Below are positions 1,599-60,778 of a DNA stretch of 64,000 bases, piece after piece. This DNA comes from Ostrea edulis (Eukaryota): contig NC_079172.1 of assembly GCF_947568905.1 (NCBI RefSeq), forward strand, positions 53,878,001 through 53,942,000. Reading direction: 5' to 3'. Made by a program: the position numbers and the translations under genes. The notes beneath the pieces are model-generated. The model searched no databases and had not been told where the DNA came from. It saw only the letters and a program-made list of their open reading frames with translations. Position 1 is the first letter of the stretch, and every line of letters starts with the position of its first letter.

Positions 1599-2422
1599 AT
1601 GGTTGAGGTAAGGGAAGCTACTTTATACCACAATCATTTTGAATATGACCTGCTCTCCCTTCTTTTTTATGGATCTTAAAGGGGCATTACCTGTAAATTC
1701 GTCATCAAAAGTTGAATTCGGTGAAAATTGCTCTGTATTATATATTTCAGTAATAACACAATATTTAATTATTTTAAACACTCTTCAGCCTCAAAATAGG
1801 CACATGAATATGTGATTTTGGTGATTAGATAATTATTGTCTTGCAAGACAATGATTCTTCCTCATATATTTCTTTACGCTAAAAGAGGTTATATAACGTA
1901 GTTTTATTAGGCTTCTCTTGTTTTTGTACAAAATAAATGTTTTTATTAGTCAGTAATATATATTTCTATGCCATTGAGAGATTTTGAGAAAAAACGGTTG
2001 CTATCACTTTCAAAGCTAATGCCCCTTTACGTGTTTTCTTCCATTTCAGCATGGAGTCTTTCACTTCGACGACGACAGATTTGGTAATGTGACTGTGTAC
2101 AATAATATTTCCCGGCATCACATCGCTGATAAATCCAGAAATTCAGAATACTTGAACGTTGGACAAAAGTATATGGTGAACGGGCATAAAACGGACAGTC
2201 TCCAGAGTGGGCAGTCGCACAAAGTGCATTATGCTGATGATGTGGGAATTATTTCGAACAAAAACTCCCCTCCGAGTTCAATAAACGCGCTGGACAAAAC
2301 GACACAGAAAGAAATAAGTCGGAGAAGGCGTCGACGAATCTGTACAGTCATTCTTTTGTTATTACTGGCTTTAATTATCGGGTTTGGGATCGGACTACTA
2401 GTGTATTTCCTACTTCTAAACG
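1599..2422 (+). CDS. Gene A exons 1-2: cytoplasmic N-terminus and signal-anchor TM
   Basis: ATG GTT GAG|GTAAGG (phase 0) joins ttttcttccatttcag|CAT at 2050. Reads [11 protein letters not shown]...EISRRRRRR then [27 protein letters not shown], donor G|GTGAGT at 2422/2423. A polybasic run before the hydrophobic segment with no signal peptide indicates N-in type II topology (positive-inside rule). Confidence 0.8.
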
Positions 2423-5400: not shown

Positions 5401-8400
5401 TTTTCTTTAACGAGTGTTGCAATAAAGCTAGACCAAATGTAAACATCGTTTGTTATCGAACGAATAAATATGTTTCATAAATGAAGTAGATTCACGAGTG
5501 ACAAAATTCGGACTTGATGATTTGCAATATATTGACATATCTGGTCAGGTTGGCTTTGACTATCTAATTGTTCAATCTAATCAAGTGTGCCTGACATTTC
5601 ACCCATTGGGCCAGTTTACGATACGAAATGTATCTATATATTAGTAGTATTTAATTTTGGTTTTTTTAAGTGAGCCTAGTGCTGGGACAATTTTAAGTCC
5701 AATCTGTGATTGTAAATGCAAAATGTGATATTATTTATAGAAAGTGTTATTTTATGTGATATTATGTCATGTCATTTGTTATTCTTTGTCTAACGTGCCT
5801 TTATCTGAATAAACATAATAATAATAATCTGAGCTTTGCAAAGTTGTAACTTTGTTCAAAAGTAAGCATATACATGACGGATATTGAGCAGCCCTGAATG
5901 CTTTTAAAGAACTTGATTAGAAAGGGAAATGGATAGAAGGCATGTGAAACATTGGTGAGAATCCATTGCTTGCTTTTTTTTTTCATACAATTTCAATACT
6001 TTGGGAATAATGAGGAATATTATCATATGTGCCTTTACAAAGAAGCTAAAAAAGTATGACGTCATAAGAAAAGATAGGTATATGACATGGACCCTATTGA
6101 TGATATGTGGGTTCCTTAAGCTAATTGTCATTATGTTCGTGCAATTCAGAGTTATTTTGAGGAAGAAAACTTTCATTTTTAAAAAAAATGAAATATTCTT
6201 GAAACACGTATAAACAATTGCTCCATGACTTTAATGGTCTTTACTAGTTGAAATTAGAAGTTGTTATAGATTGAAAAGTTGAAAATGTATCCATTTTTCT
6301 TGAAACACAATCTCTCTCGTTTTCAGAGGGAACTGGCGAAACCTTACAAGAAGCCCAGAAAGGTAAATAAGCAACTTTCATATTAGTGAATTAAAAGCAA
6401 TGGAATAAGTTACAAACGCTTTAGAATTTGGATTTTTTTTAATCATGTGTCTGTTTTACAGAATCTGTTATAGTGAAGCTTAAGCTACCAATTTTAAATG
6501 AAACATACACATCAGAAATGGGTGATATCACTTCCGGTGATTTTCGTCGAATATCAGAACCACTCTGTGAAGAGGTATTCTACTTCCTACTATTGGTTGC
6601 GATGACTTTACTCTTTATCATATAAATATTACACATCGCCTTTCATAAAAACATTTATTTTCTATTTTCGAACCTAATTTGTCTCTACTTTTTTATTAGA
6701 CATATGCTTATAACAATAATAATGATAATGACAAAAATATTGCTACTGCTAATAATGATTATCCGGTGTTTTCTTTCAGATGAAATTTTATTTTCAACAC
6801 GAAAAGGGCTTTGTCATGTGTAACGTCAATGAAATAAGGTAAATGACGAAATTAAGGTTGTTGAATTTAAGTAAGTGAAGCTTGCAGTACATATACTTAT
6901 AGTGTTCTACTAGTGGAAAACCATTTTTATAATTTCATCTTTCATTTTTCAGAAATGTTTCCAGATCAGTAGAATGTAAATGCAAATCAATCACACAGTA
7001 AGTAATGTTATCACATCAATCACACAGTAAGTAACACATCAATCACACAGTAAGTAACACATCAATCACACAGACATCAATCACACAGTAAGTAACACAT
7101 CAATCACACAGTAAGTAACACATCAATCACACAGTAAGTAACACATCAATCATACAGTAAGTTATGTTATCACATCAATCACACAGTAAGTAACGCATCA
7201 ATCACACAGTAAGTAACACATCAATCACACAGTAAGTAACACATCAATCACACAGTAAGTAACACATCAATCACACAGTAAGTAACACATCAATCACACA
7301 GTAAGTAACACATCAATCACACAGTAAGTAAAACATCAATCACACAGTAAGTAACACATCAAACAGTAAGTAACACATCAATCACACAGTAAGTAACACA
7401 TCAATCACACAGTAAGTAACATCAATCACACAGTAAATAACACATCAATCACACAGTAAGTAACACATCAATCACACAGTAAGTAAAACATCAATCAGTA
7501 AGTAACACATCAATCACACAGTAAGTAACACATCAATCACACAGTAAGTAACGCATCAATCACACAGTAAGTAACACATCAATCACACAGTAAGTAACAC
7601 ATCAATCACACAGACATCAATCACACAGTAAGTAACACATCAATCACACAGTAAGTAACACATCAATCACACAGTAAGTAAAACATCAATCACACAGTAA
7701 GTAACACATCAAACAGTAAGTAACACATCAATCACACAGTAAGTAACGATAACACATCAATCACACAGTAAGTAACACATCAATCACACAGTAAGTAACA
7801 TCAATCACACAGTAAGTAACATCAATCACACAGTAAGTAACACATCAATCACACAGTACGTAACACATCAATCACACAGTAAGTAACACATCAAACAGTA
7901 AGTAACACATCAATCACACAGTAAGTAACACATCAATCACACAGTAAGTAACACATCAATCACACAGTAAGTAACACATCAATCACACAGTAAGTAACAC
8001 ATCAATCATACAGTAAGTTATGTTATCACATCAATCACACAGTAAGTAACGCATCAATCACACAGTAAGTAACACATCAATCACACAGTAAGTAACACAT
8101 CAATCACACAGTAAGTAACACATCAATCATACAGTAAGTTATGTTATCACATCAATCACACAGTAAGTAACACATCAATCACACAGTAAGTAACATCAAT
8201 CACACAGTAAGTAACACATCAAACAGTAAGTAACACATCAATCACACAGTAAGTAACACATCAATCACACAGTAAGTAACACATCAATCATACAGTAAGT
8301 TATGTTATCACATCAATCACACAGTAAGTAACACATCAATCACACTGTATGTAACATCAATCACACAGTAAGTAACACATCAATCACACAGTAAGTAACA

Positions 8401-11400
8401 CATCAATCACACAGTAAGTAACACATCAATCACACTGTATGTAACATCAATCACACAGTAAGTAACACATCAATCACACAGTAAGTAACACATCAATCAC
8501 ACAGTAAGTAACACATCAATCACACTGTATGTAACATCAATCACACAGTAAGTAACACATCAATCACACAGTAAGTAATACATCAATCACACAGTAAGTA
8601 ACACATCAATCACACAGTAAGTAACACATCAATCACACAGTAAGTAACACATCAATCACACTGTATGTAACATCAATCACACAGTAAGTAACACATCAAT
8701 CACACAGTAAGTAATACATCAATCACACAGTAAGTAACACATCAATCACACAGTAAGTAACACATCAATCACACAGTAAGTAACACATCAATCACACAGT
8801 AAGTAACGTTCTCACATCAATCACACAGTAAGGTGTTCATATCACAGTCACAATATCTCTCAAAAATTACTCTATAGTTCAAGTATTCGTGGTCCTTTCA
8901 TTTAATCCAATCAAACACTGTCGGAGAAATCAATCAGATTTCAGTGATCTAAATAAGGCTAATTTGGTCTATATCGTAAGTAGAAATGATGTTATTGTCA
9001 AAATTTGATTCTCGTATCCAGCGACGCCGTTTCAAATTTAAGGTGTTTAGCATAGGTGATTCTTCCTTCGCCAGTCGCCCGGCATATAAAGTGAAAGTCG
9101 AGGTTTTTTTTCCGGATATGACTTTAAAACGGAGGTTCCGTGTCACTAGGCGTTGGCACAATAAAGAATGAAAGTAAGCGCCATGCATAGGTGAGAATGT
9201 GTGGCATCTTATCTAAAGCTGGTAACTATGGTGGCATATTTCTGCCTCCTATTTGCAAGTTATTTTTCTATAAATTATCTCAACATGCAAGATAATTTTG
9301 TTAACATGCAGCATAAATACATGTGTGTCAACCTGCAAGAAAAATATAATCAGATAAGAATTTGGAAAATTTTCAAAAATTATCAAAAATTGCCGACATG
9401 TGACTTCCATCATGCTAGATGCAACTTATTCATGTTGACATTCAACTTATTTATGTCAACATGCGAAATAAATATGTCGGCAGGCAACTTATTTATGTCG
9501 ACATGCAAGATAGATATCTGGACATGCATATTTATCTCATATGTCAACATAAATAAGTTGCATGTTGACATAAATAAGTTGTATGTCAACATAAATAGGT
9601 TGCATGCTAACATAAATAAGTTGCATGTCGACATAAATAAATTGCATGTCGACATGATTAAGCTGCATCTATCATGTTTGAAGTCACATTTGGGCGATAA
9701 TTGATAATTTTGGAGAATTTTACAAATTCTTATCTGATTACATTTTTCTTGCATGTCAGTATAGTTGTTGCATGTTGACATAATTATCCCGCATGTTGAC
9801 ATATTAATCTTGCATGTAGATGTAGCGTGCAACCCCAAAAATATATATATAAACAGTAAGAAGCGGATGGGCACCCTCAGTTAACTTTCTGAGGTACTAA
9901 TATTTTATTTCAATATATACATATAATGATTGGTAAAGGAAAAACTTGACTATTTGTCTTGAATTAAGTATGTACAGGATTTCTGATGCAGCTGGTTCTA
10001 TCTCTCTGAGCTCGGCTCATACAGCTCGGCTCTCGTCGCTCTTTCCGACTCTGGCTCTTCGTGGCTCCGGCTCTTACTGGTTCTTCGTGGCTCCGGCTCT
10101 TACAGCTCGGCTCTTTCTGGCTCTTCGTGACTCCGGCTCTTACAGCTCGGCTCTTTCTGGCTCTTCTCGACTCCGACTCTTACAGCTCGGCTCTTTCAGT
10201 GCGGTATTGCAATTATCTAATATTCATACAAAGCCAGGAAAGACTTGTGCAGTCACGTCTAAGGCGTTGTATAATGTTAAAAACAATTGCAATTTATAAA
10301 ATAAATTACCTTTCTAATTCCACGTCTTCACTCTCTGCCGTCACTGCATCAACTGCTTATCGCCCGAAATCTCCCGCTTATATACTACTTACAAAAACGC
10401 CATCTAGCGGGGAAACTATAACATTTAGAATACCCAAAGGCGGAGTAGGAATTTCCGAATTGTCACATAGACATAAATTATAGAAAAATAACTTGCATAC
10501 AGGGGGCAGAAATATGCCACCACAGGTAACGTCTCTACACGAGTGAAAAATAATTATCGAATGAGACGTAGAACAACAGACATGTATGGATTATTACATC
10601 AACAAAAAATGTACTGTGACGTCATGCTGTAGTGTCATGATTGTAATATTACATCATTTAGAGATTGTTACATTGTATATTGCATTATTCTCAGCGAAAC
10701 ACAGCTCGAATCAATCGTCAGTTCTCGTTAAACTCTGAGATAATGAAAAATGAATTCTACATTTTTGTCGGATGTTGGATGGCTCCCTCCCTCAATCTCT
10801 TTCTTCAATTCCTTGCAGTCAGTCTGGCCATTCCTCGCTGGAGGTGGTAGTCGATCTTACTTTCGTGGAGTCAATGAGAGGAGAAGATATTCTAAGGATA
10901 TTGGATACCAAAGCCAAAAAACTGTTCTTTGATGGATTCGAGGTTGTATTGATTAAGAATTTCATCGTGGATATTAAGGGAAGAGGTCAAAATGGTACGC
11001 CATTTGAATGAAAATATTCTGTGAATCATTTTTTCTTGAACAACTCCATTTAGTTTACTAATATTCATTTCTTCCTTAAAATTGATTAGATGCTTGTATA
11101 CCCTCACCTTGCCAAAACAGTGGACTTTGTCAGACGACAGACGATGGCGATATAGCCTGTGCATGCCCAACTGGATGGACCGGAAGTCGATGTGAATTTG
11201 GTTTGTTGAATTTAAAATTACTTACAAGTCACAAATTGCTAAACCTTTGTACAATGTACGTAATTTTTCGGATTCGTTCATATTAATTTCTGTGAATGGT
11301 TATTCTTGTTATCGATCACAGACGTCAATACCTGTATCCAGTTTCCTTGTGGAAACAACGGAGTCTGTCATGAAAAACTCGGAGAAGATTCGTGTATATG

Positions 11401-14400
11401 TAAAAGAGGCTGGAATGGGCGTCAGTGCGAAATTGGTAAATTAAAAGACCTTTGCAAATCCCTGATAGTTTTTAGATACTTTGAATTACTATTCATGTAA
11501 CTATCATTACTTTAATTGTCCATTTTTATCATTTTTATACCTGTATGTCTGTACTAAATAAAAAACAATAGCACCCTTTATAGAATAAAATGTATTACAT
11601 ATACAATAAATGACAGTAAAGGAAACACAAACTAGGACTCAAATATAAGTAAAAGTTACCTACATGTAAAATGTACAGACAATGTATAATGACAAATTGC
11701 CACATTGCAAAATTTGCACCTTTATTATGACTGGTGAAAAAGTAGGTCATATTTGGCATGTACAAATAGACCAAAACATTTATCTTTTTATTACATGCAT
11801 AAGGAAATATTGCTAGTAATTGTATCTCCTTTAAAATGACTTTGATATGTACAGTGGAAAAGAAACATGTGAATTTTGCAGACATAGACGAATGCATGGA
11901 AGTGCCGTGTAAAAATGGTGGAACTTGTGTCAATACGAATGGTTCCTTTTATTGTACCTGTCCACCGTCCTGGGAAGGATTGTATTGTGACGTAGGCAAG
12001 TAGAACACAAATATCCTAGAATGTTTATTTCAAAGGTATATATTATACCAGTAGTTTCTGTAGATTACATACTGCATTGTAATCCTTTTCTGTGAGTTAC
12101 ATCTTTATTACAACCTTGCATCTGAGAATCAATTTATGGTTTCAATGTAAGATTCAGTTTTGGATATCTTTTCAACTTTTCTTCATAATGCGGTTCATAT
12201 CGTGTTTGTACTGTTGAGAATATAATTTATGATAATCTTTACAGTTTTCTGTGTTTGCATCTGTGTGCTAGTAACATCTCATTCATAGGTTACTCATTCA
12301 CTCTTCATGATGAGGATGACTAACTCTGAAACTCTTTTCTCTAGAAATCAAAGAGCAATCTAACTAATATGATAAGTGTATATGTTTATAAAGTTTATTC
12401 TGATACAAAAAGTGAATGAATAATTTATGTTATATAGATAGGGGAAAAACCAATTTGTTCTCAAATGACAGTGTCTGTGTTTACAAACATTATATCGCAT
12501 TATTCAGATATAGATGACTGTGCGAAGACTCCCTGTCAGCACGGCGGTACTTGTATCAATGACATTGGTTTTTATAACTGCACGTGTCCTCCCAGCTGGA
12601 CAGGAAAAAACTGCCATGAAGGTGATTGTACAACAATTATCAAATTAACAGAATATAGGAGCTTTAGCAAGCATATTCCATCCTTATTTTTTAAAGTTTT
12701 CCTAACATGTATTATTCTTATGAAATTCAGCCAAGGTCCAAAGTTTGGCGACAGAACTTCATCTCTATTATGAATTCTGTCGAAGATTATGCCAGACGAT
12801 GGTCTAAATATGAAAAAGAAGAACTTGATACATTGTCAGAATGGGTTAAAAGCATAAGAGGAATATTAAAATCCCGCATTCGACATATGAAAACAAAAGT
12901 ACGAACCATCTATTCTTCTGTGTTTAGTAAACCAGAAGTGATAAGCGAAATAGATAGGTTACATGAGGAATGTGTTTTGGTTCCAGCTGACAAAGCTAGT
13001 AACAATATTGTCTTTGTAAGGCTCATTATTACAACTGTATTTTCAACGAATTTGGCATCAATTCCACTTTTGATCATCGTACTTATACTCCAACTGCCCT
13101 TTCAAAAGATGAAATTCTTCAAAACCATGCTTCAGTTTTAGACACATTTAATATCCAAGTCAATGGGTCGAATGAATATGAGTTACCGTACCTATACTGG
13201 ATTCCTAAACTACATAAAAACCCTTACAAAGATACATTGCTGGATCCAGTAAGTGCTCTACCAAGCCCCTATCTTTGCTCCTCATGAAAATATTAACAGC
13301 TGTGAAGGAGAAACTTCAAACTTACTGTGCGACTACATATGCAAGAAGTGGTGTTAATCAAATGTGGATTCTAAGAAATTCTAAAGAACTTTAAGTAAAC
13401 TTGAAATCGCAGAATTTTTCCCAAATTAATAACATTTAAACTGATGCCTTTTCAACACTATACACGACCATTCCTCACGATAAATTAAAGACTAGACTGT
13501 TTGATATCATAGACAGTTGCTTCTTCAACAAAAATGGAAAACGGAAATATTCATATCTAGTGATCAGTCATTCAAAAACTTACTTTGTTAAACACCACTC
13601 TGATTCCACGCACAAGTACTCTGAAGTTGAAATAAAAAATATGCTAGAGTTCCTTATTGACAATATCTTCGTGGTCTTTGGTGATCAGGTCTTCCAACAG
13701 TCTGTTGGAATTCCCATGGGCACGAATTATGCTCCTTTGTGTGCTGACCTGTTTCTATATTCATATGAAGCAGAATTTATTTAAAAACTTCTACGTGAGA
13801 AGAAAAAATCTCTCGCTGTGGCCTTCAATTCGACATTTCGATATATCGAGGACGTTTTGTCTATTAACAATAATAATTTTCATTCATATGTCGATTTGAT
13901 ATATCCCTGTAAGCTCGAAATAAAGGACACCACAGAGTCGTCCACTTCTGCTTTATACTTAGATATTTTATTGAAAGTAGACATTAACGGCAAACTGACA
14001 ACTCAACTGTATGACAAACGGGATGATTTCAGCTTCTCCATCGTCAACTTCCCATATTTATGTAGCAATATTCCATTATCACCTGCATATGGTGTTTATA
14101 TATCTCAACTGATTCGATATACAAGAACTTGTTCTGCGTATAGTCAGTTTTTAAATCGAGGTAAGCTACTGACAAACAAGTTGATGGTACAGGGGTTTCA
14201 ACAGTCTCGATTGGAGTAAGCATTTCGCAAATTCTATGGTCGTTATAACGATATAGTTCGTCAATACAACCTATCATTGGGTCAAATGCTGTCTAGATAA
14301 TATGCTGTTTCATACCGATTGTTAAGCCGTTCTTGGCACACTGATTTTGACTGCGGATAACTCCGTTTACCTGATCAGGATATAGGGCTCACGGCGGGTG

Positions 14401-15062
14401 TGACCGGTCGACAGGGGATGCTTACTCCTCCTAGGCACCTGATCCCACCTCAGGTGTGTCCAGGGGTCCGTGTTTGCCCAACTATCTATTTGTATTGCTT
14501 GTAGGAGTTATAAGATTGATCACTGTTCGTTATCTTCACCTTGCATGTGTAATACAATTATTGTTAAAAAGAATTCTGTTTTCTTGCTTAAGACATTGAT
14601 GAATGTAACCTGGTCCCATGTCATAACGGAGGGACCTGTCAGAACACACAAGGATCCTACCTGTGTTCCTGTGACTTGGGGTGGATTGGTAAACACTGCA
14701 ATACTGGTAAGAGTTCAATTTTATTGATCCCGATCTGTTCAAGAGAGAAGCATCAATCGTGATTTAGAGAATGATGAAGTACTTAGATTTGGAATACAAG
14801 GCTGTCATTCTTCATCAATACATGAATATATGTATATATATATATATAATTCAATAAAAAAAGCAGGAAAATATACAGTTCCAAAATATATTTAAATCAC
14901 TAGCGCTTTCTGGATTTTAACATCCATCCTCAGGTGAATACAAATTAATAAGATGCTAAAATCCAGAAAGCGCTAGTGATTTAAATATATTTTGGAACTG
15001 TATATTTTCTTGCTTTTTTATTGAATTATTTTGACTGTGTGGTATCAACTCTTTCTATTTGG

Positions 15063-15109
<47 letters not shown>

Positions 15110-15168
15110 AAATTGTTGTTTTAAAAAATCAGTGTCCGGTATAAGATATTAAAATAAACAGTAAACAA

Positions 15169-15211
<43 letters not shown>

Positions 15212-18200
15212 TTCATAAGATATGCCATTATTTATATATAAAAGACAAATGGGCGTGTAAATGTGTAAATAATGCCAAAAGCAAAGGTTGGTGTTTGAAA
15301 ACGCAATACTGTTTTCTCTAGATGTTGACGAGTGTATCAATTATCCATGTCAGCGGGGTGGAATTTGTCGCAATACCAACGGATCGTACAACTGCGCATG
15401 CCCAGACGGGTGGAATGGCCAAAACTGTGAATATGGTAAAATATATTTTATATTTATTTAGAATTTTTCACATTATGCTGACAAGATAGAGAGATGCGAG
15501 TGTATGTTCTGCGTATGATTAATTTTTTAATTGATGGTTTCAACAGTCTCGTTGGTCGTCATAATGATTTAATTTGCAAATACAAGCTATCACTGGGTTA
15601 AATGCTGTATAACGCGTTTCATATCAATAGTTGTGCTGTTATTTACTGATATTGACTACGGTTTATCCCATTTACCTGATCATGAGATAGGTGTGACCGG
15701 TCAACAGGGGGTGCTTACTCCTCCTAGGCACCTAATCCTACCTCCGGTATGGCTAGGGATCCGTGTTTACTTAATTTTGTATTTTATAGGATTTATGAAT
15801 TGAGCATTGTTCGTTATCTTCACTTGCTCAAAGAAAGATGGCTAAAACTTTATTTCTAATCGGCAAGTACTTATAACATGGAAACACGTGATATCACAGC
15901 GCAAAACACAAAGTGATCAGGAATGACACTCAAAATAGGCACCGATTTTGTATTTGATGAAATTTCTTTGTACAGTTGAATAACACATTATTAAATTAAA
16001 CAATACACAGGAAATGTCAATTTCAAAGATTTAATAATATCTACCTTCGCGTCAGTTCTATTGATTGGGATTTAATTCGCGATCTTTGTCTGTAATAGAC
16101 AGCCAGGGATTTAAATCATTACGAATAGATGAAAATGAGCAAATTCACTTCAACACAAATACATATGTACATGTATGTATCGTAATGTCAAATTTTCAAT
16201 GACATTATGATTTTATTCTATCATAATTTTGTATGGTCTACTTTTCGTTGTTTTTATGGTATTTCATGTAGACATACCCAAGAATTAAAACCATTCATGA
16301 ACACATGAAAATGAATTGATATTACTAAACGGCAGTGAAATCAGTCTAACTCGAATTTGATGAATATATGTTTTGTTTTGTTGATATTTGTTGTAGGCTT
16401 TAATTTTCGTTGTTTTCATGATATTGACCACAAACTGAAGTCCACCACAAACACAAGAAAGTAAACTAACATAAAAAAAAACGTCAACTTTTGATCTACG
16501 AAACCAATTCTTCAATTTTTCTGAAGTTATGAACATTTGATCCCAAGAAGATAAATGAATTTTACTGTCCTTTATGAATAGTCAAAATTGTTTTCTTTAA
16601 TTCGTAATTGGAATTGTAGATAAAAACGAATGCCAATCAAACCCTTGTCAAAATGGTGGATTTTGTGAAAATACAAATGGTTTTTATCGCTGCCGCTGTG
16701 GCGATGGATGGATGGGTCAAAACTGCCACATAGGTAAGTGAATCAATAAGACATCTATTTCTTCATTGGCTTACTTATTTACTTAAGTAATCAAATAAAT
16801 TTGATGTGCAGATGTTGACGAATGTCTACAATTCCCCTGCCAGCATGGCGGTCTATGTCGTAATCTAAATGGTACATATTTCTGTGATTGTCCATCGGGG
16901 TGGATAGGACCGCATTGTCAATTTGGTAAGTAGCACCATACTCATTGTATATAAAATCAATCATCAAAGTCAATAATGCAAATAGTCTTATTGTATTTGT
17001 TGGTCATGTAGAGTAAAATGGGAAATGGAACGATAATCGTAAATTGTAAATTAATTGATTATAAATTGATCATCATACACCATGGCATATTATATGATAT
17101 GTGTGGCATTACATCAGAGAAATTATAAAAAAAAAATCAATGACAAAATTGGAGTAATAAATAGTATTTTAATTTTAGATGTCAACGAGTGTTTACGGAC
17201 ACCATGTTCAAACAAAGCAGTGTGTATCAACGATATGGGCTCTTACCGTTGTGTTTGTCCCGACGGACTCACGGGACAAAACTGTGACTATGGTATGTTT
17301 TTTCAACGCGTACATGTAGGAGAAAGGTCTCATTTGGCCCTCATTTTTTGCTTTGATTTCAGAAGAGACTTCAAATCGTAAAACCTAGTAAACCTTGTTT
17401 CAAGAGGCTTTATTAGAAATATTTAAACCACGGGAATGTCAAAGATTTGGGCAAATTTGGGGTTTCAGAAGAAAATAGTTTACATTTTTCTAAATTTACA
17501 TATGCTTTTGAAGACATGTTTGCCTACGTAACATTTTGATACCAAAGTTGCAGCTGGTACTGTTGTACAGAGTTTGTACGTTTGATAGGTAAGCAAGTGT
17601 GTGCTCTATATTTTCTGAAGCAACATATGATTCTAATGAGTTAACTTTTCGCTAAAGATGGGGAAAATCGGAATTTTCATTAAGCTTGTACATTCCATTT
17701 GTACTTGGAATATATCATATAATAAAACTAATGATATTCATCTTCAGATAGGCATGATCTGATTCACTAAATAATGTTCTACAGCCTGTTCTCGAAATGA
17801 TTGCCTTATCTAAATTTCTTCTTTCACTTTACATAATATATTTATTAACACTTTCATTTTGAATTCTATAGCTTTTGGTTTTTCAGTCTATGATGCAAGA
17901 CCATAATTCAAATGTATGCTTGCCCCTGATCAAATCATTATCTGTTATCTGTTAGATATCAACGAATGTGTATCTTCTCCTTGTTATCACAACGGAACGT
18001 GTCTTAATACAGCTGGGTCTTATTCTTGCACGTGTTTGGACGGATTTTCTGGGAAACATTGTGAAAATGGTTAGTACATGTATTGAAATCATCTCAGACA
18101 TCGTGTAGCATTTTGCTCTAAAAATTCATACAAGTTTAACCGCCTTAATGGCAGGAAGCTTTAAGTTTCAGACGGCAGTATACACTATTGCATAAAAGAT

Positions 18201-46876: not shown

Positions 46877-47170
46877 ATCGTTCTTTTGTTGTCTGAGAAA
46901 TCCATTTTCATGGACTCATTTGATATATTTATTCAATATCTCATGTTTATATCATCGTATCATAATTTTGTCATAATATGATATTCTATCATACTTTGTT
47001 ACCATTTTCGTATTTTAGTGCAGATTTACCGTGCTTTAGGTTAGTTTTGTTAATGATCTTTTACATTTCGAGCTATCCGTTCAGTTTTCGCAACGGCCTT
47101 TGTATCATTATTATGTAGAGACACAAGTCTTGACATTTTGACTGTTGAAATGTTTTACATATTGGACACA

Positions 47171-47176
47171 AATAAA
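47171..47176 (+). terminator. Candidate poly(A) signal of gene A
   Basis: AATAAA about 295 nt after the stop. The sequence is AT-rich, so this is weak on its own. Confidence 0.3.
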
Positions 47177-49564
47177 TCAAGATATATTTATCTCGTATTC
47201 ATGAAGTGTACGCTCCCAGCTTGTGATCTTAAATGTATGGTGATAAAAGGTTTTTTCTTTCAAGTTTTACATCTATTGTTTTAGATCCTAAATTGAATTA
47301 ATTTTGTTTGATTGAAGTTCCGAATGTTTCTTAAGTTTCCAGGTTTAAATAAGTAATAGTCTTCATCGTTACCCGCAAGTTTTTCATAATGGTGATCAAC
47401 ACCACAGGGCACGAATGACTGGAGGTTGTTAAACGCTATTGGAAGTAATGTTTCTGAACGCATCATAAATGTCTAGGTGACCTCTGATACCAGGCGCTCC
47501 GTCAAAACTATTTAATTAAGGCCTATTCCTGCAGTTGCTGAATTATATGTATGTACTCTTAGTTGTTTATTTGTCATCTCGGATCAGTGGTACTCTGACC
47601 TGTGTTGAAAAAAAAATTCATGACCATGCAATAAGACTTCGCAAATATTTTCCACTGGGTCTGAATTATATGTTTTGCTTTTATTCATTTTTAACTAATT
47701 CATATAAAGTTATGAGAAGGCAATTGAAAATTAACAACTCAATACAATTCTGTTCGAAAGAATACACTATTGTTTTAGGGGTAACTAGGCACTACGGATG
47801 TTATAGTAACCCATTTATTAAGGTCTCTTGAAAATAATATATGCATTTCAGATAGAGTAAAAAGATAACTCATCTTATATATAAGACTTCATTTTATATT
47901 TAATGTGACATTCTCCTCTCAGCTTAACATAAACAAAAGTTGCTACAATGTATTTGGTGTTCATATTATTTACCCCAAACACAAATGTTCCTTTTGCCCA
48001 GTGAGTGTTCTGTTGTCACTTATGTTAGTAGTTACGTTAGTAGTAACACGTCTTAAAAGTATCTAATGACTTTCAGGGCGACTATACATCCGAGGTCGTT
48101 ATATGTACACCATCACCCTTGTCAACTATTCTAAAAAAAGGCCCCGGGGTCATAAAGCTTAGACGAACCCACCTTTAATCTAATTTTCACTTTAATAAAC
48201 GGAACATATAGTGAATGATGAGACTTAGATCAAAAGTGAGCTCATTTAAACTTTACTGCGCCGTAGTCTTATTAAGGATAGTCGACACGGGTGTTTTAGA
48301 TGCTATAGCTGGTATGTTCTAAGATGAATACACATCTTTTACCTCATATGAAATATTATACTTTTTATCATATATAATTGATATGTTCACATAGAATGAG
48401 AGCGCAGTTGTTTGTGTAATTACTTGGATTTGCAGCTCAAACTATTCACCTCTAAATGTCAAAAGCTCCCAGTATCTTCTTTCCAGTGAAATATATTTTA
48501 TAGTAAAATATTTTGTGTTTATTATATATCATCAAGCAGGCGCGTAGTTGCCTATACGCAAGTCCGCAACTGCGTACACATCATTTGCGAGAGAGAGAAA
48601 GAGAGAGAGAGAGAGAAAAAAAAATCTTTGCTGTTTAAATATTTGCGCCTCAAAAATAAATATTCCCGGTTTTTAATTCAATCAGTATGATAATGTACAT
48701 TCAATCAAATCTAAAATCCTTTTTGAATTTCAAATCATTAACATCATATCGAATATAACTTAAATGCACAAAATATACACATGCACGTGTAGTAGACGAA
48801 TGAGGATATATTTTGTGATTTCATTGGTAAAACAGATGCTTTAAAAGGACTGGTTCACGATTTTTGAACAAAATATTTTTTATTTTTGAAGTGAAACATT
48901 AAAAATATAACTCATTTAATGTTGTCAGACAATATTTTGACCTACTGAATGCAAGAATAAAAGCAATATTTTAGCCTTAAATCTGTGTTATAAAAACAAA
49001 GACTCGAGTCTTTTTATGTAAACAAACAAACCAGTGAAATATAAATTTTGTAGTATAAAGCATCTTAATTTTGCATAATCACAAATTTTAACTTTTAGAT
49101 GACACATTTTACCTGGAGAATGTTTGAAATGTAATAGATATAATAAACTTAGATCGATATCCATTTCTTCTGAAATTTTCGTAAACAATAACATACCGCA
49201 ATCTTTGTTTACAAAACAAATAATGAATTCTCTAAAATGAGCTTCTGTGATAATGTATAACCTTAATTTTTATGTGAAATTATTTGAACACATTAGACAG
49301 TAGACTTTGGTCATTAAAAGTGAAAAACAAAATTTTGGGAAAAATCGTGAGTCAGTCCCTTTAAAGGGCATCACCCCCAATAGGATTTTGTACTGGACCC
49401 ACTGGGACCTCAGGGTGGTCCCGGACCCCTTGCCATACTTTGCGTACACTTCATTTTCTTTCTGGCTACGCGCCTGTGACAAGGTGTCTGAACATGAGAA
49501 AACAGCAGGGATAATGCATGAATAAAGACCCTGAAGAATAAAACCGACTCCATATTATAACATC

Positions 49565-50295: not shown

Positions 50296-50299
50296 TAAG

Positions 50300-50499
50300 N
50301 NNNNNNNNNNNNNNNNNNNNNNNNNNNNNNNNNNNNNNNNNNNNNNNNNNNNNNNNNNNNNNNNNNNNNNNNNNNNNNNNNNNNNNNNNNNNNNNNNNNN
50401 NNNNNNNNNNNNNNNNNNNNNNNNNNNNNNNNNNNNNNNNNNNNNNNNNNNNNNNNNNNNNNNNNNNNNNNNNNNNNNNNNNNNNNNNNNNNNNNNNNN
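50300..50499. other. Assembly gap (200 N)
   Basis: Run of N. The true distance between genes A and B is therefore uncertain. Confidence 1.
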
Positions 50500-53501: not shown

Positions 53502-53661
53502 ATTCCCGGGGGAATAAGATTAACAACATGAACAAATGTGTATATAAATAATAAATGCATATACATTGTACCATTTTGGTCAAAACTTTACAAATATGAC
53601 AATAGGACAACGCAATGTGAGTAATGATAATAATTATAATATCCGTGTGTGCAATGATTCA

Positions 53662-55790
53662 TCACGTGACGGATTGATCCTTGCAAGAGTTACTGTCCGT
53701 AGGATACATACAACTGTTGACAGATGGCACCCAAATCAGTCCGGGTGAACACATTTGAATTTTTTCATGGCCGGATTCACACTGAATGTACAGCGAGCAG
53801 TTAAAAGGATGAGCAAAATACCCATTGCTTTTTTGTAAGCAAGGGAGAATATCCGGACATATTAAATCGTTCTTTGGGTATATACATGTTTGGGCATCCG
53901 GATCATACACAAGATTCATGGCACATGTCAGTTCCTGACCTCTGTTAAGACTTATGCACTGTATAAACTTCTTACAGTCGTCTGGGTGAGGATGGAGGGT
54001 ACCTGCTTTTGCTTGCAGACACGGTTCTCGTTCATATTCTACAAAGATAACAATTACCCATGAAACATCGAGAGAGTGATGAAAAAATATAATGATGAGC
54101 AAAAGATACAGCAAAAAATCGATAAAACGATGAAAAGAGATAATTATAAGCGAAAGATACAGCAAAACGTTTGAAAAAGTGATGAAAAGAGATAATCGTA
54201 AGCGAAAAATACAGCAAAACGTTGAAAAAATGATGAAAAGAGATAATTATAAGCGAACAATACAGCGAAACATCGAGAAAGTGATGACAAGAGATAATCA
54301 TGTATGAAAATACAGCAAAACATCGATAAAACGATGAAAAGAGATAATTATGCTTGAAAAATTCATCAAACATCGATAAAATGATAAAAAGAGATAATTA
54401 TAAGCGAAAGATACAGCGAAACATCGAGAAAGTGATGAAAAACAAAAATTATGAAATGAGATCATTATCAGTGAAAAATACAGCCAACACGGACCAGTGG
54501 ATATACCTGAGGTGGGATCAGGTGCCTAGGAGAAGTAAGCATCTAATTTCATAGAAAATCCATCGCAAAATCTTTTTTTCGCGGTTACTAGATTTTTCTA
54601 AAATACAGTTTCATTGATACGTAAACTCTATATTCTTCAATTAGGATGAAAACTTTAACATCGTTGATTACTTGATTTTGTGGCCTGGCATAATCACGAA
54701 AACAAACAAAAATCAAACAAAAAGTATTGAAACCACAGTACACCTTTTGTTTTTATCAATTAAGATGATTTTTATCTATGATAACTACTGTGTTCAAACT
54801 ACAAAAGGTTTATTGTCATAACTTAAATAATCAAGAAAGAATATTAGTTTATGTTTTTAAGCAATCTTCAGTTTAATGTGCTCATCTTTTGAATAAAAGC
54901 AGAATTCTATTCCAGAAACTTTTCGATGGTAGCTTGCCTCCGTCATCAGGTAAAGTGATCAACAGACCTTAGTCAGATTGCTTTAATTGTTCATTGCATT
55001 TTAAGATTTGTTGTTTATGATTTGTTGGGAACATCCTAATGTGATGATCAATATAGATCGTGATATTGATGTTTGAAGGTAATGGAGTGATGTCTTTTTA
55101 TGTCAAGATGAACATTGTTCTTAAAGCTGTTCAGAATTTTTTAAAGAAATTGCTTCTCATTGTGTAATGAATACATCTGTGGTGATGGTGACGTTTATAA
55201 CCGTATTTAAGACCTTAATTGATCAATGCCGCTTTTGGCATTTTACTGTACAATGCATTATTTGAAAATCAACGTTTTGCTCACGTCAAAGTAGATGTAT
55301 GTATTCCTTTATACGAAATTCTGTCCACAAATTCATTCTCTTTCTAAGCCTTAGAAATTCCTAATTCTATATTTTATCAAACATTCTAAAGTGTAGTTAA
55401 CAAACCTATGTAATATACAGCTTGAGATTCAGCTATATCATTTGATGGAGAAGGGAGACTTACTGGGTCTGCCCGGATACACGGACCTGGTTTGGTTGCT
55501 GGAGAACACACTCTCCGTGGTGGAGGAGGGAGTGGTCGTCGGCTTGGTGACGGGAATTTTCCTGGTCAAAGGTTCGTACCCCGTCGGCTTAGGGGGAGCT
55601 TCAGCAGGATCAGGGCACACCATCCCTGGTCTATCATGGACACAGTTATTTGAAGACACATCAAACACCAGTTCCCCCGTGCAAGTTTGTAGTATTGACT
55701 TTTTGTGTTCACATTGGAAATATTTATTACAGTCTGTTGGATGTCTGTAAAAGCTTCCATCTTGAAGTGAACAGGGATCCCATGCCAACA
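53662..55790 (-). CDS. Gene B three ChtBD2 domains in two exons
   Basis: 55790-55464: C-x13-C-x5-C-x9-C-x12-C-x8-C plus a Pro/Thr linker. 54038-53662: C-x14-C-x5-C-x10-C-x12-C-x8-C and C-x13-C-x5-C-x9-C-x12-C-x8-C, with HPxDC/HPxNC motifs. Confidence 0.9.
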
Positions 55791-58700
55791 CTATTAATGA
55801 AAAAGTACATATACCTCAATAACCCAAATATATCATCGACTAGTGTAAATAGATGATGAGCCATATCATAGTATTGTTTCAATGAGGCCATTTCTATTCG
55901 CAGCAGCGCCGTGCATCATACTGTTACCATGAAAGGTGGAGATAAATCCATACACAATACAAAATAGATAGTTGGGCAAACACGGACCCCTGGACACACA
56001 AGAGGTGGGATCAGGTGTCTAAGAGGAGTAAGCATCCCCTGTCGACCGGTCACACCCGCCGTGAGCCCTATATCGTGATCAGGTAAACCATACAATATCA
56101 TACTATCATTAAACAACCTTATGAACGTTTTCTTGACAATAACTTAATGAACAATACCTTTCCTAAAATGTTATAGCATGGTTTTTGAAACGCAGTGAAT
56201 TTGTTGATATCATGTTTGTAGCCCTTCCTGAGTCCAGGACACAAAAAGGGAGAGAGCAGAGAGTTCAGTTATTGGTATAGCCATGTTGTATGATATTTGG
56301 CAAATAGCACATGCGTACTATTTCATCGTCGTGTTCTATATTATCCATATTGACTCAATCAAACATTAACACATTTTTCGTACATAATATAAATATTTAG
56401 CACTATGACAATCAAAAACAATGTAAAAGTTCATGAAAGCGCAATACTGGACGTTAATGGTGTTTTAAAATGTAGATATAAATGCAATGTAAATCTGCAT
56501 TACATTTTAACCATATTGATCCATCATACAGACATGTACATATGTAGTTATACATTAGTGGTGAACGATAATTAGCTGCAAAGAACACCAATCTCATTTT
56601 CTTGTTAGATATTGTTGCTGGATAGTGCATGGTCCAATGGCTACTTACACATTTCCCTTGTAGCTTCCACAGACACCGTGCTTTTATTGACAGGTACTGT
56701 CGAGACTGATTTTGTTGTGGTAGGAGACGCGGTGCTGCTGGTAACTTCCAGTGTTGATGACGTTGTAGTGACGTCAGTCGTCGATGACGATTTAGTTGTG
56801 GTTGTGGTGGATTTTGTAGAGGAAAGCACTCTGGTGGTGGGTTTAACAGTAGTAGGTTTTGCTGTGGTGGGTTTTTCTTGAATTCTATTGAATCCAACAG
56901 GTGTTCTCTCTCGTTCAATCTTGATTTTCACTTTATCTAATTCGATTTCAAATCTATCGACCAGTGCGATGTGTGACGAGGTCTCATTCACTTTCGGAGC
57001 AGACGTCTCTATGACGGATATTATATCCCGCTTTGATGCGTCTTTTTCCACAAAAAATAATGTAAAATTTATGTGTTCATCCCTGAAACAGTCAAATAAA
57101 TCGTATAATATCTAGGTTTAATTTCTCACTTCATGTTGGTAGGATTCATTTTTATTCTCCATACAGATATATCCTCATAAATAATTTTGTTTAATAGATT
57201 TATTTTATAGAAATACTTTTGGGGTGTATATACCTCTTCTATGTATTGCATCACTTACTTGATGGACAGGACTTCACATCCACGGTAGGTCGACTCAAAC
57301 TGACTTTTCTTGTAAAACGTATCCATCTTTAACAACAGAATTAATAGAATTGTGATTATTACAAACAGGTATTGTACATTTATTCATTGTTTCATATTTG
57401 TTCATTTAATGTGAATGAAAAATGTACACATGTCCATGTATGAAAGACAATAGGTCCATTGTAGGAAGTACCTGGTCCGTCTTGGATGAAATGAATCAAT
57501 AATTAAGATATTGAGAATCGCCAGCACTTCGGAGATATTTTTAATTAGCTTTATTTCAAACATTCGGGCTTATCAAATCATATTAACATTTCCTGTATTT
57601 CACATTGTCATATATATAAATTATATTCTAAATCGAGGTCTTTATTAATTGAAGAACTCTGAAACGTACGTGATCATAAAGGTATGCTAATGCTTGAATT
57701 TCCTCATTATTATCAAATTATTGTTGTATAACGAACAGACATAATAATTCATTTAACAATTAAATGTGTATCATGTTCATTCATTGAAATACCTGCATAC
57801 GATAACACGTATTCTTTTAAAAACCACAGCCCTAAAGTATTTATCCAGTGGTCTCGGGCGAATTTGTCAGTATATGACAGGTTCGTTTAAATCCGGAATT
57901 TTGTTACTCTCTCTTGACAGTCGCATCACGAAGCCTGTGATGGGCCCGAGATCGGTGTGATGACACTGCGCCATAAATCAGCAGAGTCAATGACTTGATC
58001 AGGACCCGCCAGTTAAAACATTAACCGACCAACCAACAATTATATATATATAGTCGATTCTTCTAGGAAATATTTCCTTGTTTTCCATTTTTTGCATGTA
58101 AGTTTATCTGCTGTGAGGTTCCTAACGATAGGGGCCCCGCATGTATGTCTCCTGCACATGAAAGATCATTTCTGTCTAAATATCTGATGCAGTTAAATGC
58201 AACGATGCAATGCTAACAGAAATTCCTTCCACAACCATTTTCAGCCAAATGTTGCATTATGATAAGCAACGGTTGCAATGTAGTAGGCTGGATAACATTT
58301 TTGCAAGTACGAGACATCTGGACATAAAATGTCGACTAGTTGTCTTGTATATATGTTTTATTTATGAATCTCGCATAAAAAGCCTTTATCTTATCGGTGT
58401 TCATGCAGGAAGTTCGCTTTTTAGGGTGTATATACTGACAAATGCAATCTCTGTGACATATGGCAGATTGACATAGCCACGATATTTTCATTAGCATAGG
58501 AGGCAAATTTCTTACTAAGTGTCCTTAGTGCACACTACATTCTCTATTGTGAAAATTCATACATGCGTTATTCTAAACATAGACTTTTCACTTTTTCGAC
58601 ATAATATTAACAAGGAACATGTGGTGAGTAACATTTGTTCTTCAATTTATCATGTTAACTATTAATAAAAACAATAGTGATAAAATAATATAATGAAACA

Positions 58701-60778
58701 TTTATAAAAATGTTTTCTCTATTGTATAAGTTATTCTAAAGTTAGTGGATTTGTTTGTACTCGTTTATCGTTAGTTTAGCATGGCGTAACTGATTTCTAG
58801 ACACACTACATTTGGGTTTGACTAAGCAGACTACCAGTAGTCCGACAACGTCACCTATAGCCTTAAAGCACAGTGACAAGTGTCGCACAGATAAAATCAG
58901 CCTCACTTCCAACTATGTAATATCTCCTGTATATACATACCACCAACGTGACAAGCCACACCTTAGAGAGAAGCAGCAGTTGATGGTTTGAAATGTTTCA
59001 ATTTATTCTGCATTTGGTGTGGCCTTCGTGTTGTTGGTTTTATTAATGTGTAAATTCCAAAATAATGAATGCTCAGAAGAAGAAAATTACCTGTTGGCAA
59101 TATGCCATTGCTATGTTGTTAAAATCGTTGGACGAAAGGTTTTCGAGGTTCTCATCAAATTTGCTGCTTTTTATTTTCAACGCTAAATTGGCACGAAGCA
59201 TCTCTGCAAAAAAGAGCAATACTTTAATTAAAGGATGTGTAATGCTAACCGCTGTACACACGAATTCATTATTATTCGCGGGATTCCATGGATATACTGA
59301 CTACATTATGTCCTTTTATTCAAGCTCAAACCAAATACCACCTAGTGATAATACACTCTTTATTCAAACGTAAGTTCCCACAAAAACTGTGTTAACATCA
59401 ACGCCTTCTGGTGAAGTTTGTTACAAGTGAAACTCAATTTCATAAATGGGGTTTATTTCATCAAATTTGAATTACAAAAGACTCAATACATGAAATGTAT
59501 AGAAAAGTTGTTACATGGGAACTTTCTTATGTCACAGGATTGTAATTCACAATTAATTAACTATCCTGGTATTCATTGAAGCAATAGAGGACAATATCTT
59601 AACCAGAAATCTTGATTTCCACAAAAATAAATGATATCGAAATATTTCAGAATAGTGTGGATATTCAAAAACTATAAAGCATGTGTACTCACCAATTTCA
59701 TTTTCGTGTGTTTCTACAAGGAAAAGGTGGAAGAGTTGATAATTTAATCAACTATACAAGATATCGAACGTTATAGAAACCTTATAATTTGCTGAACAAC
59801 ATTTTTGGTTGATTGAATGGAAGGACGTATTCCATGATTTTCCGTAACTAAGATACAAGGTAACCAACACTTAAACTAGCACTACGAAAATCTTGAGCTA
59901 GGAACTACTAACAATTGAAGTATCACATTTAGGCAAAGTCACGTGAATCTATAACTAGTAAGAGAAAAACTGCATTTGATAATCAGAGAAAAGAAGCTCC
60001 AGATGTAGTTCTTACTTTTTAGTTCTACTGCAAAGTAAATGGCTGCTCCCAAACTAGCTGCAAGAATTAGCATCACACACATTCCAAAAATTGGACGACA
60101 TGTTTTTCGAACCTTTCGTCCAAATGGTTCTGGCGCAGGTTGAATGAAAGCGAATGGGTCTATTGTTTCTCTGGAACCATAAAGTTTCCTGTTGGCAAGA
60201 GACTGAATGTCTAGTCTAGAGGAAGCGGTACTTAGCTTCCTGGGATTGTTGTCGTAAGCACTTGCTTTGCTATGCACACTTGCTAAACTGTCTGTTGTAG
60301 ATCTAATGCGACTGTTACGAACTAAGCCTCTATCACAGTCTTTCTTTGTATTTGAAAAAGTTGAAGTTTGGCTAACTTTCCTATTGTCGTCACGTCGACT
60401 TGCCTCTGAGGTTCTACTAACACGACTTCTTTCACTTCGATCGTCTGACAAATTGTCTCGTCTCCGTTGCTGTCCAGCACTATGTCTTCCATCTTCTGAT
60501 GATAAATTTTCCCGCCGTCTATTCGGACTGTTCTGATTTGGTCGTCTGGCACGTCTTTTGGGGGTTTCTATTTCTGACACCTCACTCAGAGAGGTGGTGC
60601 TATACCCGGAAGTGTCTTCGATCTGTCGCCGCTGACGCCTCTTTTTCACTTTCTCCTCTTCCGATATTGAGCCATTTAAATCTGATTGGGAGGTATGAAC
60701 CCTGGGAATGATTTGACCTGATGAAAGTTTCCGTCCAGAAAGTTCCCCGGAATACGTTTGACTGTGATGGAGTTGTTT
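53662..60778 (-). CDS. Gene B: type II membrane protein, TM - SEA - Thr/Ser mucin stalk - 3xChtBD2 (at least 700 aa, start codon unresolved)
   Basis: Minus-strand exons 60778-60016, 59713-59693, 59203-59091, 57326-57259, 57082-56649, 55790-55464, 54038-53662 (TGA). Sum is 2103 nt, phase-consistent, all GT-AG. A possible first exon MTQYIHTK (61164-61140, phase 1) would need the acceptor at 60717 or 60681 instead of 60778. Confidence 0.82.
54055..54460 (+). repeat. About 51-bp degenerate tandem repeat, about 8 copies, in the last intron of gene B
   Basis: gatacagcaaaacatcgataaaacgatgaaaagagataattataagcgaaa. Confidence 0.85.
54484..54545 (-). mobile_element. Penelope-like tail fragment
   Basis: gaggtgggatcaggtgcctaggagaagtaagcatc. 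Confidence 0.62.
55930..56088 (-). mobile_element. Penelope-like 3' tail
   Basis: Reverse complement of 14375-14543. Confidence 0.75.
56649..59713 (-). CDS. Gene B micro-exon, SEA-like domain and mucin-like stalk
   Basis: 21-nt exon (K-THENEI), 113-nt exon (EMLRANLALKIKSSKFDENLENLSSNDFNNIAMAYCQQ), 68-nt exon (MDTFYKKSQFESTYRGCEVLSIK), 434-nt exon (DEHINFTLFFVEK...KPTTAKPTTVKPTTRVLSSTKSTTTTTKSSSTT...). Confidence 0.78.
60016..60778 (-). CDS. Gene B cytoplasmic Arg/Ser-rich region and TM
   Basis: Open frame of 254 codons rich in R/S/D/E, then GRKVRKTCR, then PIFGMCVMLILAASLGAAIYFAV, donor A|GTAAGA. Confidence 0.8.

Follow-up and report, generated by a model that had tools for sequence, protein, structure and literature searches.

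Two genes lying tail to tail in a stretch of Ostrea edulis DNA (contig NC_079172.1, positions 53,878,001 to 53,942,000; hereafter the window, that is the whole stretch of 64,000 nucleotides that was analysed) raise the question of whether they are related by descent or are neighbours by chance, and of what two such membrane proteins would do in a mollusc. The window is AT-rich eukaryotic DNA from an 895-Mb assembly. Gene A, on the forward strand, and gene B, on the reverse strand, both appear to encode type II membrane proteins that carry SEA domains and end in the chitin-binding domain CBM_14 (ChtBD2). Our comparison points to A and B being old sister lineages of one molluscan family, not a recent local copy, and they appear to have been tail-to-tail neighbours since before the bivalve-gastropod split. 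With a probability of about one half, we propose that the two proteins would keep in place or order newly formed chitin on the apical side of an epithelium that secretes it, the shell-forming mantle being the most plausible one.

The pairing was found outside the oyster: a first reading of the window made from its letters alone (the sequence-only reading) had called for a look at synteny in other oysters, and a convergent B-like/A-like pair is present in a scallop and in a limpet. In the scallop Argopecten, the B-like gene (XP_069104363) and the A-like gene (XP_069104362) are convergent and 5.6 kb apart (L001). In the limpet Lottia, the B-like gene LOTGIDRAFT_232881 (P0020) is convergent with a gene for a 2198-residue SEA and CBM_14 protein, 1.4 kb away (L004), and the C-terminal SEA4-ChtBD2 cassette of gene A maps colinearly on this neighbour. 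In Elysia, genes for a B-like and a SEA protein lie close together, three locus tags apart (003916 and 003919) on one contig. B-like proteins are present in at least 11 molluscs, across bivalves and gastropods, and all of them are uncharacterised. The number of EGF modules in the A lineage varies, with 7 in the scallop orthologue, 51 in this oyster and none on record in the limpet. The relatives are named 'hypothetical', or else 'probable chitinase 10' in Patella, 'mucin-16-like' in Haliotis and Delta/fibropellin-type in a mussel-type entry, and these last three labels are mis-namings. A word search, whose length window excludes proteins of the size of A, gave no annotated full-length orthologue of A or B from a close relative. 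The Magallana gigas entry K1QRC5 (P0049) holds a 34-residue piece of the homologue of SEA4 exon 3 in an unrelated context and is probably a mis-joined annotation.

The 2198-residue Lottia neighbour is probably Lotgi1|232880, as judged from adjacent numbering, length and domains and not from sequence. Lotgi1|232880 was listed in 2012 as a major acid-insoluble shell-matrix protein with SEA and peritrophin domains (PMC3374290), and our literature search found no other paper combining a SEA domain, shell matrix and chitin. The sequence-only reading knew of no named family with the architecture of A and B; all relatives are indeed uncharacterised, but the limpet A-like protein had already been listed in the shell matrix (PMC3374290). 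The building blocks, and the presence of one family member in the shell matrix, are thus already known; the architecture of type II anchor, SEA, spacer and CBM_14, the deep conservation of the pair and the expansion to 51 EGF modules are undescribed as far as our searches tell.

The model of gene A was rebuilt by hand and with a script. Gene A covers 1599-46876 on the + strand, with 62 coding exons forming a single open frame of about 2664 codons, which code in order for a short cytoplasmic tail, an N-in membrane helix, a 36-nucleotide (nt) exon, SEA1, an EGF array, SEA2 to SEA4 and one CBM_14:

1599..1607, + strand: proposed first coding exon of gene A, ATG GTT GAG then a gtaagg donor, read from sequence alone.
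2050..2422, + strand: tail and membrane helix of gene A, RRRRRR then a hydrophobic stretch; ends in phase 1 and aligns with the Pecten and Argopecten A-like proteins.
6327..6362, + strand: 36-nt juxtamembrane exon of gene A, phase 1-1, which keeps the frame.
6462..6574, + strand: SEA1 exon 1, 113 nt, phase 1 to 0.
6780..6838, + strand: SEA1 exon 2, 59 nt, phase 0 to 2.
6953..6997, + strand: extra SEA1 exon, 45 nt, phase 2-2, coding for a CxC-containing insert within the loop that joins strands 2 and 3.
10819..10994, + strand: last SEA1 exon, phase 2 to 1, with an alternative donor after 10984.
11090..40171, + strand: EGF array of 45 phase 1-1 exons and 51 EGF modules (Pfam EGF and EGF_CA).
31435..32241, + strand: the sole large EGF exon, 807 nt with 7 EGF modules (Pfam EGF 171 bits, EGF_CA 165 bits, 7 stretches).
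40259..40371, + strand: SEA2 exon 1, 113 nt.
40487..40557, + strand: SEA2 exon 2, 71 nt.
40698..40873, + strand: SEA2 exon 3; donor after 40873 preferred, alternative after 40837.
41137..41252, + strand: SEA3 exon 1, 116 nt.
41441..41508, + strand: SEA3 exon 2, 68 nt.
42046..42281, + strand: SEA3 exon 3, covered by the related-species transcripts L002 and L003.
42813..42925, + strand: SEA4 exon 1, 113 nt; an RNA-like contig begins exactly at 42813, and L002 and L003 cover the exon.
43375..43445, + strand: SEA4 exon 2, 71 nt, spliced in protein P0048 and contig L003.
43542..43753, + strand: SEA4 exon 3, donor after 43753, phase 1.
46659..46876, + strand: last exon of gene A, with a linker, one CBM_14 (ChtBD2; Pfam 40.4 bits, cut-off 22.1) and the stop codon (46874-46876).
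46877..47190, + strand: 3' untranslated region of gene A, with AATAAA at 47171-47176; L002 aligns up to 47190.

The start of gene A at ATG 1599, its helix exon (2050-2422, phase 1) and its tiny exon (6327-6362) agree with the sequence-only reading. The exon at 1599-1607 joins 2050 in phase 0 and thereby places the motif HFDDD 8 residues from the methionine, like in the B family. The 36-nt exon is the best flanked of three open 36-nt AG..GT candidates between 2423 and 6461, and alone among them it has both a gtaa-type donor and a clean polypyrimidine acceptor. The CxC insertion encoded by the 45-nt exon aligns with the same loop in the membrane-proximal SEA of Pecten, Batillaria and Elysia (scallop A-like and gastropod type II SEA proteins), and a profile of CxC-bearing SEA domains gave 90.8 bits on SEA1 with this exon compared to 69.6 bits without it; a model lacking the exon was rejected on these scores. 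After the 45-nt exon comes a 1.85-kb minisatellite built of donor-like units (caatcacacagtaag) that supplies about 80 extra donor copies (window 6953-8832). SEA2, SEA3 and SEA4 occupy three exons each with phases 1-0, 0-2 and 2-1, and the shorter donor of SEA2 exon 3 (40837) is less likely, with 65.8 bits on the leave-out SEA profile compared to 71.0 bits for 40873.

The EGF modules repeat at a fixed pitch of 37-39 residues, with 6 residues between successive modules, and 46 of the 51 carry the calcium-binding N-terminal motif, the Asx-hydroxylation consensus being likewise present in 46/51. The assignment to EGF_CA (PF07645) was made from the profile match, the D/N-x-D/N-E/Q motif before the first cysteine and this consensus. 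Two EGF exons, 36546-36656 and 36961-37071, are 95.5% identical with flanks at about 93%, indicating a recent tandem exon duplication; every other pair of EGF exons in gene A is at most 71% identical. At 19869-22400 an intron of gene A contains long tandem repeats, and the 200-230-codon open frames that they give in each of the three + frames are spurious.

Gene B, on the - strand, codes for 738 residues in 8 coding exons, 7 of which are within the window, in the order long tail, membrane helix, 21-nt exon, SEA, Thr/Ser stalk and three CBM_14:

L006 9718-9605, - strand: first coding (ATG) exon of gene B, MDKTPSWVKHFDEN..., with a gtaagt donor, phase 0, about 9.6 kb beyond the right end of the window.
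60016..60778, - strand: second coding exon of gene B, tail and membrane helix, phase 0 to 1.
59693..59713, - strand: 21-nt exon of gene B, phase 1-1, KTHENEI; the Argopecten orthologue has KTHEDEI at the same place.
59091..59203, - strand: gene B SEA exon 1, 113 nt, phase 1 to 0.
57259..57326, - strand: gene B SEA exon 2, 68 nt, phase 0 to 2.
56649..57082, - strand: gene B SEA exon 3, continuing into the Thr/Ser/Pro-rich stalk, phase 2 to 1, aligned with Argopecten P0012.
55464..55790, - strand: first CBM_14 of gene B (Pfam CBM_14 44.5 bits) and second Pro/Thr linker.
53662..54038, - strand: last exon of gene B, CBM_14 numbers 2 and 3 (Pfam 81.8 bits, two stretches) and the stop codon (53664-53662).

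An AATAAA signal for gene B is found on the minus strand at 53501-53496. The B family has the N-terminal pattern M-x-x-P-S-W-V-K-x-F-[DE]; this motif is absent from 60779-64000 and was located 9.6-9.7 kb past the window, and the exon starting at 60778 contains no in-frame ATG upstream of the membrane helix. Position 60778, the right end of the range given in the sequence-only reading, is the acceptor of the second coding exon of gene B, and the intron between it and the ATG exon is about 12.8 kb long. Gene B aligns end to end with Argopecten XP_069104363 (P0012), with 44% identity, residues 1-694 against 44-709. The cytoplasmic tail, about 266 residues long up to the helix, shows strong conservation between oyster, ark clam and scallop. 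Two tail motifs, SGYSTTSLSE(L/V)SE and DPF(A/Y)FIQP(V/A)PE, the latter just before the helix, are kept in oyster, ark clam, scallop and mussel (P0006-P0012), and neither has a Pfam match.

All 69 modelled exons of the two genes have AG/GT borders with the exception of a GC donor after 11995 (gcaagt, 11995-11997), which follows an EGF exon and is the sole non-GT donor in either model, and both models are stop-free throughout. Several details of the sequence-only reading could be set against these models. The 113-nt first SEA exon is present in both genes (A 6462-6574, B 59203-59091; 113, 116 and 113 nt in SEA2 to SEA4 of A). The 21-nt phase-1 exon (59713-59693) and Thr/Ser stalk (57082-56649) announced for B are likewise there. 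The split of the SEA into three exons with phases 1-0/0-2/2-1 holds for B and for SEA2 to SEA4 of A, but SEA1 of A takes four exons. The spacer of A, described as 50 EGF and 3 SEA, does contain three further SEA domains, but its EGF modules number 51, in 45 exons. Gene B does end in ChtBD2, with three C-terminal CBM_14 domains and not one.

We then considered the identity of the domains that had been called SEA-like. Pfam searches of the single SEA exons, at E up to 10, gave no SEA match, and a PDB sequence search with the SEA of an orthologue gave no match. A word search with the membrane-helix exon of gene B led to the spliced Tegillarca protein P0006, and on B orthologues the Pfam SEA profile (PF01390, cut-off 26.4) scored 28.7 bits at P0006:225-365 and 27.8 bits in P0026; five other B-like proteins scored 17-26 bits, under the cut-off, and the B-like P0016, P0020 and P0022 had no SEA match at E<=0.01. 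The scallop A orthologues P0034 and P0045 reached 113 and 127 bits on Pfam SEA. A SEA profile built without the window genes recovered all five window SEA domains with 51-97 bits, and a profile made only from vertebrate MUC16-like SEA gave 28.8 bits for B, 26.0 for SEA4 of A and about 7 bits for SEA1 to SEA3 of A. A search of 1.84 billion cluster representatives with the P0006 SEA returned only 33 matches, comprising B-like proteins, multi-SEA mollusc proteins and skate/catshark 'mucin-16-like' proteins with 9-23 strong SEA repeats. These skate/catshark proteins are the sole non-mollusc animal matches, the other non-mollusc match, P0040, carrying bacterial-type domains.

For the SEA of the B family, an AlphaFold2 model was made from a Tegillarca orthologue, which has about 65% identity to B, and 17 further rows; the model has a pLDDT (predicted local distance difference test) of 93.3 and a pTM (predicted template-modelling score) of 0.86. 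Its top six Foldseek matches are all SEA domains, from MUC16 (8vm1, 7sa9 with two chains, 8gkl and 1ivz) and TMPRSS6 (9nrc), and a seventh SEA fold match, the protease SEA 2e7v, was found at rank 19; the SEA matches have a probability of 1.00 and TM (template-modelling) values of 0.53-0.65. Each SEA contains two conserved cysteines about 20 residues apart. The classical self-cleavage motif G-S-[VI]-V-V, which is typical of many SEA domains and not required, is absent from all five window SEA domains; at this site B has KDEH, SEA2 to SEA4 of A have GQDPQ, GTVQP and ENGKDK, and SEA1 of A has degenerate sequence after the CxC insertion. Pfam on orthologues, leave-out profiles and the predicted fold together support the identification of what had been called SEA-like as SEA domains of the MUC16 type.

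Are A and B kin, or were they assembled independently by domain shuffling and brought side by side by chance? SEA, EGF and CBM_14 are phase 1-1 mobile modules and could have been shuffled in this way; a profile of the B family only gives SEA1 of A just 14 bits. In the SEA tree, SEA1 of A clusters (95%) with the first SEA domain of the gastropod type II SEA proteins, to which it is closer than to the SEA of B. Against independent shuffling, the two genes are built alike: in each the membrane-helix exon ends in phase 1, a tiny phase 1-1 exon comes next, and the SEA opens with a 113-nt exon and has identical internal phases. They also share the N-terminal motif HFD[DE][DN] about 10 residues from the methionine. 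The B family forms one clade (100%) with the SEA1 of the Pecten A-like protein as its sister (94%), and the membrane-proximal SEA of A and of B, whose grouping in a phylogeny the sequence-only reading had asked for, fall together on one side of a split with 98-100% support, apart from the distal SEA and the vertebrate repeats. The same convergent pairing in scallop and limpet and the closeness of the genes in Elysia also argue against chance, and we regard independent shuffling as very improbable. The descent of A and B from one cassette, as first proposed, is supported by the tree side, phases and motif common to them, but because SEA1 of A is nearer to the gastropod type II SEA proteins than to the SEA of B, with which it has only 23% identity, the split is taken as an ancient one and not a local duplication. 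SEA3 and SEA4 of gene A pair with SEA5 and SEA6 of Pecten (99% and 98%), and the scallop A-like gene is for this reason taken as the orthologue of gene A.

Whether the chitin-binding exon belongs to gene A was addressed with transcripts. The donor (after 43753) and the acceptor (before 46659) agree in phase, which is 1 in each case. Two RNA-like runs of this organism show similar low depth over SEA4 exon 3 and the ChtBD2 exon, and the unique intron between them has zero depth in these runs and about 30x in the DNA run. Two RNA-like contigs break at 43751 and run on for 70-76 nt elsewhere; because the 2-nt offset equals the AG common to the exon end and any intron end, this break shows splicing at 43753. 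In a related species, two transcript contigs with about 77% identity (L002 and L003) contain SEA3 exon 3, SEA4 exons 1-3, the ChtBD2 exon and the 3' untranslated region, SEA4 ending exactly at 43753 and the ChtBD2 exon beginning from about 46659. The sequence-only reading had named an unjoined ChtBD2 exon as an outcome that would count against it; in L002 and L003 this exon is joined to SEA4. A SEA-...-SEA-CBM_14 ending is found also in Gigantopelta, Haliotis, Nucella, a Dreissena protein and the Lottia neighbour, and the ChtBD2 frame of L002 compared to the window has a dN/dS (nonsynonymous to synonymous substitution ratio) of 0.06, with dS about 1.3, indicating purifying selection. L002 (1791-2966) and L003 (whole) splice as predicted, with dN/dS to the window of about 0.05 despite frame breaks. 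The possibility that L002 and L003 represent a paralogue in this genome was rejected, since the genome has only the window locus, with 70-79% identity exon by exon.

All four CBM_14 modules (PF01607) are over the cut-off of 22.1 bits (A 40.4; B 44.5 for one and 81.8 for two), and they would be expected to bind chitin. The hydropathy scan gave one segment in A (residues 98-116, after RRRRRR) and one in B (after RKVRK). A single hydrophobic segment with a basic N side and no N-terminal signal is found also in all full-length relatives, and the disulfide-rich domains of A and B are C-terminal of the helix, as expected of type II single-pass proteins in this predicted topology. The N-in transmembrane helix proposed earlier for both genes is thus retained, with basic residues on its N side and no signal peptide. 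Pfam recognised no signalling domain in either cytoplasmic tail.

What would such a pair do? Both products would be single-pass type II surface glycoproteins with SEA by the membrane and CBM_14 at the extreme C-terminus, farthest from the cell. On general per-domain figures, gene A would give a rod of about 130-150 nm from its 51 mostly calcium-binding EGF modules and three SEA domains, and gene B, with a short O-glycosylated Thr/Ser stalk and three CBM_14, might reach perhaps 40-50 nm, its long conserved tail providing a link to the cell interior. A chitin tether at two distances is plausible from this layout, and we infer the chitin binding, the rod geometry, the tissue and the tether function. 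A more specific version, which we hold to be a long shot, makes of the pair a two-part cell-to-chitin attachment of the shell-forming epithelium that would predate the bivalve-gastropod split: B would be a short, signalling-competent anchor and A a spacer stiffened by calcium, its length depending on how many EGF exons the gene has, and thus a ruler from the mantle surface to the nascent chitin sheet before its incorporation into the shell.

The main rival to the tether is that A and B are membrane-bound precursors of shell matrix, the type II anchor serving for delivery, a protease cutting near or in the membrane-proximal SEA, and the ectodomain entering the chitin framework of the shell as a matrix component and not a tether. 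We judge this possible but on balance doubtful. SEA domains are generally known to adjoin the membrane in shed mucins and type II proteases, the lineage-conserved CxC insertion in SEA1 of A stands exactly at the classical SEA self-cleavage loop, and the A-like neighbour in Lottia is a major acid-insoluble shell-matrix protein (PMC3374290). Set against release are the absence of the G-S-[VI]-V-V motif from all five SEA domains, the conservation of the tail of B (about 266 residues) from oyster to ark clam and scallop, which is hard to square with a mere delivery anchor, and the fact that no shell proteome match is known for B-like proteins. The two lineages may therefore differ: a lasting membrane role is favoured for gene B because its tail is long and conserved, and release is favoured for the A lineage because the Lottia A-like protein is in the shell matrix. 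Chitin receptors or anchors outside the shell, in the gut lining (gastric shield or a peritrophic-type layer) or in the sensing of fungal or parasite chitin via the conserved tails, seem unlikely. CBM_14 with mucin stalks is, as general knowledge, the classic design of gut peritrophins, and the tail of B has conserved Ser/Thr-rich and DPF-type motifs; the sole experimental datum for the family, however, puts an A-like protein in the shell matrix, and a signalling domain is recognised in neither tail.

A tether at the mantle surface, the reading we prefer, has to be held against a number of observations that weigh on the other side. The mantle is a putative site of expression; the only RNA-like runs are unlabelled and cover the 3' end of A thinly. 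In this oyster itself the SEA4-to-ChtBD2 joint is only probable. CBM_14 folds do not invariably bind chitin. The Pfam and fold tests on SEA were run on orthologues, with our own profiles standing in for the spliced proteins of the window. Both L002 and L003 have a frame broken twice, by +4 nt where SEA3 meets SEA4 and by -1 nt before ChtBD2, and each contig carries its own, different stop codon, which together with the low dN/dS suggests that the 3' part of the A orthologue was recently disabled in the related-species lineage. The scallop A-like genes are without CBM_14, and no ChtBD2 exon was found in the 5.6-kb spacer behind the scallop A-like gene. Some lineages can thus dispense with the terminal ChtBD2 of the A lineage, which is absent in scallops and frame-broken in the related species. 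Recovery of the Lottia protein from shell matrix implies that it had got out of the cell, and release accounts for this more readily than a permanent anchor does. The likeness of Lottia 232880 to gene A covers the C-terminal part, the locus examined having stopped short of its 5' end.

Among known systems, the closest is this same Lottia Lotgi1|232880 (LOTGIDRAFT_232880), which combines several SEA domains with a single C-terminal peritrophin-A (CBM_14), encoded by a last exon of its own, and lies tail to tail with a B-like gene; unlike gene A with its 51 EGF modules, it has no EGF match on record, and it is known only from a proteome list. The SEA repeats of MUC16 (CA125) are the best structural matches (8vm1, 7sa9, 1ivz) and share the two cysteines about 20 residues apart, but MUC16 is a type I protein with a C-terminal anchor and proline-threonine-serine (PTS) tandem repeats, without an EGF array or a chitin-binding domain. 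The type II serine proteases (enteropeptidase, matriptase/TMPRSS6, HAT) have, like A and B, an N-in helix followed directly by a juxtamembrane SEA, and TMPRSS6 and 2e7v are fold matches; A and B differ from them in having no protease domain, all their exons being accounted for by tail, helix, SEA, EGF, stalk and CBM_14. Drosophila Dumpy, a giant membrane-anchored EGF-repeat fibre that fastens the epidermis to the chitinous cuticle, is functionally like the role proposed for A. Dumpy is built with DPY modules and a ZP domain, is anchored at its C-terminus, and lacks SEA and CBM_14, whereas none of the 62 exons of A is left for ZP or DPY and the orthologues have only SEA, EGF and CBM_14 in Pfam. 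The CBM_14 domains and mucin-like linkers of gene B recall peritrophins and insect intestinal mucins, and Pif/BMSP are likewise chitin-binding proteins of the shell matrix. All of these are, in contrast to A and B, secreted by a signal peptide, and none has a type II anchor with SEA; Pif/BMSP have VWA, for which Pfam gave no match in any A or B exon or orthologue scanned.

How mantle cells hold, orient and hand over the chitin scaffold for shell mineral is poorly understood, and the pair offers a concrete, testable candidate for the link between mantle and chitin, because one of its lineages is already in the shell matrix. An uncharacterised bivalve and gastropod family gains a defined architecture and gene structure, and in this pair bivalves and gastropods have kept both the order and the orientation of two genes. 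The scallop and oyster orthologues, with 7 versus 51 EGF exons, would be a natural experiment on spacer length.

The spacer between the two genes contains an assembly gap:

50300..50499, no strand: run of N in the intergenic spacer, flanked by repeats.

The gap lies 3.4 kb past the stop codon of gene A and 3.2 kb past that of gene B, with no exon within 3 kb. That it breaks a gene was considered and rejected, as no exon or frame crosses 50300-50499 and the 3' untranslated region of A ends near 47190. The two stop codons are 6.8 kb apart, and only this intergenic distance hinges on the estimated length of the gap. A 34-nt inverted repeat abuts the gap on the left, and its right flank resembles a repeat at 63.7-64.0 kb. 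Copies of a dispersed repeat are present at 63400-64000, 50540-50683 and 4250-4375, one of them abutting the right side of the gap, and the segment 63400-64000 has 49 matches in the genome at about 75-90% identity.

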